Shown here piece after piece: positions 26,201 to 27,108 of a DNA stretch of 64,000 nt (position 1 is the stretch's first letter; the number at the start of each line of letters is the position of its first letter). A program made the position numbers and the translations under genes. The stretch comes from Hypanus sabinus (taxonomy: Eukaryota): assembly GCF_030144855.1 (NCBI RefSeq), contig NC_082710.1, forward strand, positions 14,136,001 through 14,200,000. Direction: 5' to 3'. The notes beneath the pieces were generated by a model. It saw only the letters and a program-made list of their open reading frames with translations, was not told where the DNA came from and did no database searches.

Positions 26201-27108
26201 ATATTCGGCCGTCTCTCCATGCTGAAAGACGCCACACACTTACACGCCAGACCCCATACAGACCCACACCCCTCACCTGTGAGGAGATAAGGCCGTCTCT
26301 CCATAAATGACAGAAACCACACAGGTAAACCCCTGATCCCCCTACTCAAACTCAGACCCACACCCTTCACCTGTGAGGGGGATATTCGGCCGTCTCTCCA
26401 TGCTGAAAGACGCCACACACTTACACGCCAGACCCCATACAGACCCACACCCCTCACCTGTGAGGAGGATATTCGGCCGTCTCTCCATGCTGAAAGACGC
26501 CACACACTTACACGCCAGACCCCATACAGACCCACACCCCTCACCTGTGAGGAGATAAGGCCGTCTCTCCATAAATGACAGAAACCACACAGGTAAACCC
26601 CTGATCCCCCTACTCAAACTCAGACCCACACCCTTCACCTGTGAGGAGGATATTCGGCCGTCTCTCCATGCTGAAAGACGCCACACACTTACACGCCAGA
26701 CCCCATACAGACCCACACCCCTCACCTGTGAGGAGATAAGGCCGTCTCTCCATAAATGACAGAAACCACACAGGTAAACCCCTGATCCCCCTACTCAAAC
26801 TCAGACCCACACCCTTCACCTGTGAGGAGGATATTCGGCCGTCTCTCCATGCTGAAAGACGCCACACACTTACACGCCAGACCCCATACAGACCCACACC
26901 CCTCACCTGTGAGGAGGATATTCGGCCGTCTCTCCATGCTGAAAGACGCCACACACTTACACCCCAGACCCCATACAGACCCATACCCCTCACCTGTGAG
27001 GAGATAAGGCCGTCTCTCCATGCTGAAAGACGCCACACACTTACACCCCAGACCCCATACAGACCCACACCCCTCACCTGTGAGGAGGATATTCGGCCGT
27101 CTCTCCAT
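17060..27108 (-). CDS. AK6: Adenylate kinase 6 (AK6/CINAP/Fap7 family), spliced CDS complement(join(17060..17249,18554..18699,22340..22398,23884..23976,27078..27108)), 172 aa
   Basis: Exons sum to 519 nt with consistent phases and GT-AG introns. Translation: [172 protein letters not shown]. Carries the P-loop GTPGVGKT and the AK6-typical [14 protein letters not shown]. Confidence 0.97.
18554..18699 (-). CDS. AK6: AK6 coding exon 4
   Basis: gtag|GTGATT...AACAG|gta, 146 nt, [48 protein letters not shown]. Confidence 0.96.
19000..19270 (-). mobile_element. Rex1/Babar LINE 3' fragment
   Basis: Rex-type C-terminal remnant ([13 protein letters not shown]...LPTIEHIY). Confidence 0.7.
19644..22225 (-). 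mobile_element. CR1 LINE (3' ~2.2 kb of ORF2 + UTR) in AK6 intron 3 with nested Penelope (20566-20693) and Rex (~21750-22045) fragments
   Basis: [75 protein letters not shown]. Confidence 0.93.
20620..20658 (-). ncRNA. Minimal type-I hammerhead ribozyme motif of a Penelope-like element
   Basis: Minus strand GTTAGTC-CTGACGA-A-GGGTCGGCCC-GAAAC-GTC-GACAGC has the CUGANGA and GAAA cores, short helix II, palindromic ACGU helix III and a GUC cleavage triplet. Confidence 0.7.
22340..22398 (-). CDS. AK6: AK6 coding exon 3
   Basis: aaag|GTCAGCTG...GACAGG|gtgagt, 59 nt, [19 protein letters not shown]. Confidence 0.95.
22525..23182. mobile_element. pogo/Tigger-like non-autonomous DNA element in AK6 intron 2
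   Basis: Terminal ...ggcccaatcaaccagaatccactg and repeated taattgggac/gtcccga subterminal motifs. Confidence 0.5.
23884..23976 (-). CDS. AK6: AK6 coding exon 2 (P-loop)
   Basis: gcag|GTACTCCAGGT...GAAG|gtgagt, 93 nt, [30 protein letters not shown]. Confidence 0.96.

Follow-up and report, generated by a model that had tools for sequence, protein, structure and literature searches.

Minisatellites whose first monomer lies across an exon-intron boundary are known in the genes F7, CBS, IFI6, LMNB2, and PDGF (PMC1557585). In human F7, a 37-bp variable number of tandem repeats (VNTR) in intron 7 places four to eight identical pseudo-donors after the authentic splice donor (Borensztajn et al. 2006, PMC1557585). 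Under physiological conditions and across 50 constructs, the most upstream of the identical donors was the only one selected; the pseudo-sites are functional if this first donor is destroyed (PMC1557585). LMNB2 (100-bp unit) and PDGF (81-bp unit) use the authentic donor only (PMC1557585). For the intron 2 minisatellite of human IFI6 (6-16), the accounts of Turri et al. 1995 given in PMC1557585 and PMC4526556 describe constitutive use of the two nearest repeat donors, with in-frame longer isoforms and three mRNAs. Here, an array of this kind is described in the adenylate kinase isoenzyme 6 (AK6) gene of the stingray Hypanus sabinus. The window is the whole stretch of DNA that was analyzed, 64,000 nt of contig NC_082710.1 (assembly GCF_030144855.1, forward-strand positions 14,136,001–14,200,000), and all coordinates count from its first nucleotide.

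The array is a minisatellite of the F7/CBS/IFI6 type, and its first unit is the real AK6 exon 1/intron 1 junction. The reading preferred here, with a probability of about 0.7, is that the minisatellite arose from this junction, that its first donor is dominant in splicing, and that an open reading frame (ORF) through the first units is a by-product.

AK6 gene and junction array

AK6 (CINAP/Fap7; Pfam AAA_18) is predicted from the sequence as an intact gene of five exons on the minus strand (Table 1). The model was verified one exon at a time. Its exons total 516 nt, or 172 codons, with GT-AG borders at every intron and an intact ORF. Joining exons 1 and 2 gives ...NILLTG/TPGVGKT, in which the Walker A P-loop GxPGxGK[ST] directly follows the N-terminal beta strand, and Pfam AAA_18 is matched by exons 2 and 4. 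The protein is identical at 171 of 172 positions to the annotated AK6 of Hemitrygon akajei (red stingray, P0160), with one E/K difference near the C-terminus, and is very close to that of Mobula birostris (P0161). Both of these proteins have the N-terminus encoded by exon 1. P0160 matches AAA_18 at 5e-36 and the human AK6 structures 1rkb and 3iij at ~4e-91. Inside AK6 intron 3, ORF fragments resembling the reverse transcriptases typical of long interspersed nuclear elements lie at 20300–21760 on the minus strand.

The array was delimited by Tandem Repeats Finder, a unit list, and a boundary alignment. Tandem Repeats Finder reported a single array at 25458–27118 with periods of 87, 181, and 449 nt, 9–19 copies, and 91–94% matches. 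A pattern scan for ATG, exon, and GT gave 19 recognizable copies, and a decayed 20th copy lies beyond 25411. Intron 1 thereby holds 18 spare copies of the start codon and 5′ splice site. Each unit comprises 10 nt of 5′ untranslated region (UTR), a 31-nt (or 28-nt) exon copy, and 46–66 nt of intron, and the head-to-tail units of 84, 87, and 97 nt fall within the roughly 10–100 bp of minisatellite units. AK6 exon 1 is also the exon part of unit 1; its donor is the real one, and identical pseudo-donors follow in the intron.

Homology between the 5′UTR and the repeat starts just 10 nt upstream of the ATG (GTCTATCAGC in the original, GTCTTTCAGC in the repeat). Upstream of the ATG, the array copies carry the repeat tail (GTGTAAGTGTGTGGCGTCTTTCAGC), whereas the authentic copy has unique 5′UTR. 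Since the unit contains only these last 10 nt of the 5′UTR, the promoter is not reiterated, and alternative promoters or first exons supplied by the array were considered and rejected on this ground.

Unit 1 (87 nt) has the authentic exon, unit 2 (84 nt) an exon copy encoding MERRPYLLT, and unit 3 is again 87 nt. Unit 4 is 97 nt long and has a different, "B-type" intronic tail, the donor GTGAAG, and a TAG. Beyond it, a 181-nt higher-order unit (97+84) occurs six times, together with one extra 87-nt unit (unit 8), and the exon end of the fifth copy, at +352, is out of frame. Copies in this central part are identical or one base apart. The last three units and the 20th copy show decay, with loss of the ATG, the GT, or both. 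The layout of the units indicates that the array is old and that its proximal and central parts were expanded or homogenized recently.

Near-perfect 181-nt higher-order copies can be mis-sized by assemblers, and the array or its copy number could in principle be an assembly artefact. The array is ordered inside, its distal copies being old and decayed and its proximal units mosaic. Mis-assembly would not create such an order, and we regard an artefact as extremely unlikely.

On the preferred reading, an 87-nt unit was duplicated head to tail that contained the final 10 nt of the 5′UTR, the 31-nt coding exon beginning with the ATG, and 46 nt from the start of the intron. Slippage or unequal exchange would then have raised the number of copies to about 20. 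The distal units would be the old and decayed remnants, and the central 181-nt higher-order repeat was probably amplified or homogenized very recently.

Two G-quadruplex-type motifs lie on the sense strand after donors 1 and 2. Both are canonical, with four G-runs and loops of <=7 nt, and the fourth G-run is missing in later units (GGGG>GGCG). The motifs may be relevant to repeat instability or as G-run splicing enhancers. RNA folding of 26790–27170 (z = -1.68) gave no feature that singles out the first donor.

Promoter-proximal 5′ splice sites and U1 binding can favor productive elongation. The array could accordingly be regulatory, its sites for the U1 small nuclear ribonucleoprotein and its G-runs near the promoter boosting transcription, blocking premature polyadenylation, or slowing the removal of intron 1. 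Its 16 strong donors that are intact and lie no more than 1.4 kb from the start, the two G-quadruplex-type motifs, and the G-rich sense strand would suit such a role. The near-identical copies show recent expansion, however, and not conservation, and a regulatory array appears very unlikely.

Read-through frame

The original prediction held that the frame from the AK6 ATG at 27108 stays open past three spare donors, and that splicing from these would yield AK6 proteins lengthened at the N-terminus. Translation of 26780–27108 agrees with the first part: the frame passes the exon ends at 26994, 26907, and 26820 and closes at the TAG at 26793–26791. The pattern scan and arithmetic also agree, with the exon ends of the first four copies, counted from the authentic one at 27078, at +0, +84, +171, and +258 nt. 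All are multiples of 3, and the additions would be 28, 57, and 86 aa. Each unit ends in MERRP(NI/Y)LLT+G, so that on joining exon 2, which starts at 23976, the native strand before GTPGVGKT is regained as claimed.

Two details of the spare donors and of the repeat peptide needed small corrections. The first three sites (authentic, +84, and +171) read GTGAGG, but the fourth reads GTGAAG and is weaker at +5. The CxC motif is present in the repeats, but the second unit has GEGYGS instead of GEGCGS and has lost one Cys.

The open in-frame pattern is no more than chance for such a repeat. The units of 84 and 87 nt are multiples of 3, for which the prior is about 1/3. Just 5 of the 56 nt in the intronic part are A, and 55% of the shuffles of this part are open in the read-through frame. 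Over units 1–3, 3/6 frames are stop-free, and long ORFs also occur in other frames and on the opposite strand of the array. As copies of each other, units 1–3 are not independent trials and in essence count once. That these three units lack stops and stay in frame is a by-product of the 84/87-nt lengths and the A-poor, G-rich sequence, and does not point to a coding function.

No sign of coding constraint is seen in the read-through peptide, which is translated 5′UTR and intron sequence. Units 1–3 differ at three places, all of them non-synonymous (C>Y, G>A, NI>Y). A Pfam search of the read-through ORF (26794–27108, minus strand) returned only noise below cut-offs, with a best E of 0.2. The suggestion that the repeats form a metal-binding, redox, or lipidation module found no backing beyond the CxC itself: no Pfam domain and no related protein of 69–220 aa was found, and the first Cys is Tyr in copy 2.

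As had been predicted, splicing from donors beyond the TAG would leave a premature stop in the frame opened by the first ATG. What the original prediction missed is that each unit has its own ATG, and that the surroundings of this ATG in A-type units match those of the authentic start (A at -3, G at +4). Even if an intact spare donor past the TAG were used, an ATG in frame with exon 2 would therefore stand 31 or 28 nt ahead of the exon junction. Such an ATG would stand behind upstream ATGs, with a stop far from the junction, so that the transcript would likely be a target of nonsense-mediated decay under the usual 50–55-nt rule.

The units could also act as tiny cassette exons, with a 32-nt (or 29-nt) pseudo-exon of C plus ATG...ACAG included between exons 1 and 2. 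An acceptor-like tctttcag/C ATGGAG...ACAG/GTGAGG recurs in all A-type units, and a pseudo-exon of this kind would shift the frame of the first ATG yet supply an in-frame ATG of its own. With about 6 nt, however, the pyrimidine tract is short, the 55 nt between neighboring donor and acceptor are short for a vertebrate intron, and a 32-nt exon would be poorly defined. The "acceptor" is the copied end of the 5′UTR, which in the original is GTCTATCAGC. Cassette exons are very improbable on this evidence.

Choice of splice donor

Under the preferred reading, splicing would follow the pattern of human F7, LMNB2, and PDGF: the donor nearest the cap, at 27078/27077, would be chosen, and the product would be the canonical 172-aa AK6. 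The spare donors would be largely silent pseudo-sites that leave with intron 1. The 84–87-nt units and the cap-proximal position of the first donor point to its dominance. A large array that badly disturbed the splicing of AK6, a conserved gene with a housekeeping role, would hardly be expected to last. Hemitrygon akajei, the closest annotated relative, has only the canonical 172-aa AK6. No isoform label appears in the name of P0160 or in those of the AK6 entries from Mobula, Pristis, Amblyraja, Leucoraja, and Narcine. Skate transcripts L001–L003 contain the canonical junction only, and skates belong to a different family from the stingray.

Several points weigh against dominance of the first donor. 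The spare donors are identical to the authentic one from -41, which is 10 nt before the ATG, as far as about +25, are equally strong, and are each followed by G-runs. In classical in vitro experiments in which a strong 5′ splice site was duplicated, the intron-proximal copy was sometimes preferred. The F7-type evidence comes from mammalian genes and internal exons, whereas the AK6 array concerns a ray and a first exon. The two nearest pseudo-sites of IFI6 and of CBS are used besides the authentic donor (PMC1557585, PMC4526556). In the sawshark Pristiophorus japonicus, the predicted AK6 isoform X1 (P0169, UniRef UPI00398F2315) has the end of exon 1 duplicated in frame. The searches for array-derived protein count here as well, through their reach. 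A word search of 5.8 billion proteins with a 126-aa read-through query gave a single, spurious match (E 0.57), and it covered proteins of 69–220 aa only, so that isoforms longer than 220 aa, including the +57 and +86 aa forms, would escape it. Array-derived sequence was found nowhere in the protein collection, not even as a genomic ORF call, which suggests that the collection probably holds no contig across the array and gives this negative limited power. Same-species N-terminal fragments were also sought with the exon-2 ORF; all that came back were genomic ORF calls, from bony fishes and similar sources.

The elasmobranch AK6 proteins were gathered by a profile search, with P0019 and window exons 2–4 as separate rows, followed by a cluster listing; the entry for the protein of the window itself was not among them. 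In the sawshark protein, the insert is 16 aa long and stands before GTPGVGKT; it corresponds to a 48-nt unit without an ATG and gives PNLLLIG twice, and a canonical isoform X2 (P0170) is annotated alongside. A 48-nt unit without an ATG points to a probably independent origin. Isoform X1 either suggests that the junction was duplicated independently in a second elasmobranch lineage or reflects a mapping artefact. N-terminal differences also occur in the shark AK6 models P0166, P0158 (Chiloscyllium plagiosum), and P0155 (Rhincodon typus). In one model, 8 additional aa (RVTQTPTS) separate LLTG from TPGVGKT and would push the P-loop glycine out of place, and others are extended upstream, to 202 and 345 aa. 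Such differences look like annotation noise around exon 1.

Use of the three proximal spare donors beside the authentic one would produce a ladder of AK6 isoforms with 28, 57, and 86 extra N-terminal residues, perhaps functional through their Cys. The frame arithmetic allows it, and the IFI6 and CBS arrays provide precedents: three mRNAs from two downstream repeat donors in the one, two used pseudo-sites in the other. Sawshark isoform X1, a predicted protein, is exactly such a product. Crystallized human AK6 constructs (3iij and 5jzv) carry N-terminal extensions of 7 to 33 residues, as judged from alignment offsets, and an N-terminal extension thus need not break the fold. Against a ladder stand the searches without a domain or a relative among proteins of 69–220 aa, the origin of the peptide in UTR and intron with copies that differ only non-synonymously and one Cys lost in copy 2, and the open frame expected from composition. 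The arrays with 81–100-bp units and F7 use the first donor only (PMC1557585), and the sawshark model may be an alignment artefact. On balance, we consider the ladder unlikely.

A more specific form of the same proposal is graded use of the three in-frame spare donors, with each rung adding a start-exon peptide and a Gly/Cys/Trp-rich linker, and with the same device arising independently in the sawshark. This is a good deal more doubtful. Together with first-donor dominance, occasional use of the nearest spare donors may occur; the resulting proteins, extended at the N-terminus, would be harmless or non-functional. Minor extended AK6 isoforms are possible in this sense. Minor use of the spare donors at a detectable level is unlikely, and a selected function of extended isoforms is highly improbable.

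Table 1. Features of the AK6 locus and its junction array; the 5′ splice site consensus is that given in PMC1557585
Feature	Position in window	Strand	Remarks
5′UTR and CpG-rich promoter region	27109..27500	-	Upstream of array; GC 49%, 22 CpG in 392 nt
Tandem array of exon 1/intron 1 junction	25345..27118 (about)	-	
AK6 coding exon 1	27078..27108	-	31 nt, ATG GAG AGA CGG CCG AAT ATC CTC CTC ACA G; last base is first of Gly codon
Authentic 5′ splice site GT	27076..27077	-	Context CAG/GTGAGG; 8/9 match to MAG/GURAGU
G-quadruplex-type motif, first	27046..27073	-	Directly after authentic donor
Exon-1 copy 2	26994..27021	-	28 nt; spare donor GTGAGG at 26993-26992; in frame
G-quadruplex-type motif, second	26962..26989	-	After donor 2
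Exon-1 copy 3	26907..26937	-	31 nt; spare donor GTGAGG at 26906-26905; in frame
Exon-1 copy 4	26820..26850	-	31 nt; spare donor GTGAAG at 26819-26818, weaker, A at +5; in frame
Read-through ORF from authentic ATG	26794..27108	-	105 sense codons
TAG ending read-through frame	26791..26793	-	In "B-type" intronic tail of unit 4
AK6 exon 2	23884..23976	-	Acceptor ...tcctggcag/GT; encodes P-loop (G)TPGVGKT; Pfam AAA_18 (2.5e-05) and AAA_17 matches
AK6 exon 3	22340..22398	-	
AK6 exon 4	18554..18699	-	Pfam AAA_18 1.2e-10
AK6 exon 5, coding part and stop	17060..17249	-	Coding 17249-17063; TAA 17062-17060

Neighboring genes and other repeats

RAD17 (PF03215) lies divergently upstream of AK6, head to head, and the arrangement is the same in H. 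akajei and Mobula. Within about 30000–64000 on the plus strand, RAD17-like ORFs were found at 55339 (...LFNLYLHQNYVDFFSDIDDIVRASDYLSDADF...) and 63129 (C-terminal ...EELIIEEYDSD). A motif search for the RAD17 N-terminus, made to calibrate the intergenic distance, gave no match. No TAF9-like ORF came from a crude motif search of the window, and Rfam and tRNA scans of the window gave no matches.

A second, unrelated tandem array at 5579–5908 on the minus strand has a 72-nt unit in 4.6 copies at 100% identity. Each unit contains ...GGCAGGTGAGGCTGGGG, with a strong donor-like CAG/GTGAGG, plus ATGs, and the array lies just downstream of a GC-rich, promoter-like stretch (about 5900–6130). A large minisatellite at 6263–9677 has a 27-nt unit in 128 copies with 91% matches and a C-rich plus strand, and it carries spurious long ORFs in all frames. 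A short patch related to it lies at 10814–10881.

Comparison with known systems

Splice-donor minisatellites are a kind already known from human genes, and the AK6 case is unusual in that it includes the start codon and lies at a first exon. If the spare donors are silent, the array would be a further natural example of the F7 rule, by which the first of identical donors wins. It would make a convenient test of that rule, with a cap-defined first exon that has no upstream acceptor, strong donors, and a start codon of good context in each unit. If the donors are used, repeat expansion would recruit intron and UTR sequence into protein. The array is also a caution for annotators and users of RNA-seq. 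Junction reads that fall short of the unique 5′UTR fit every copy equally, so that models with an extended N-terminus at such arrays, possibly including sawshark X1, need anchored or long reads.

Sawshark X1 concerns the same gene and the same junction as the stingray prediction and is a predicted protein. F7 resembles the AK6 array in that the first monomer spans the exon-intron boundary and the authentic donor is followed by identical pseudo-donors. The F7 VNTR belongs to internal exon 7 and has a 37-bp unit with 4 exon bases, 5–9 copies, and a weak donor (UGG/gugggu), whereas the AK6 array belongs to a first exon with a start codon and has an 84–97-bp unit, about 19 copies, and a strong donor (CAG/GTGAGG). 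IFI6 is the system closest to the original prediction, as its array supplies extra donors like that of AK6. Its unit is much shorter, its exon is internal, and its donor use is shown by transcripts; the AK6 unit measures 84–87 nt. The 31-bp VNTR at CBS exon 13/intron 13 and the LMNB2 and PDGF arrays reiterate a junction 10–20 times within an intron, as in AK6, and the LMNB2 and PDGF units resemble those of the AK6 array in size. These three are mammalian and, unlike the AK6 array, none involves a start codon or a first exon.

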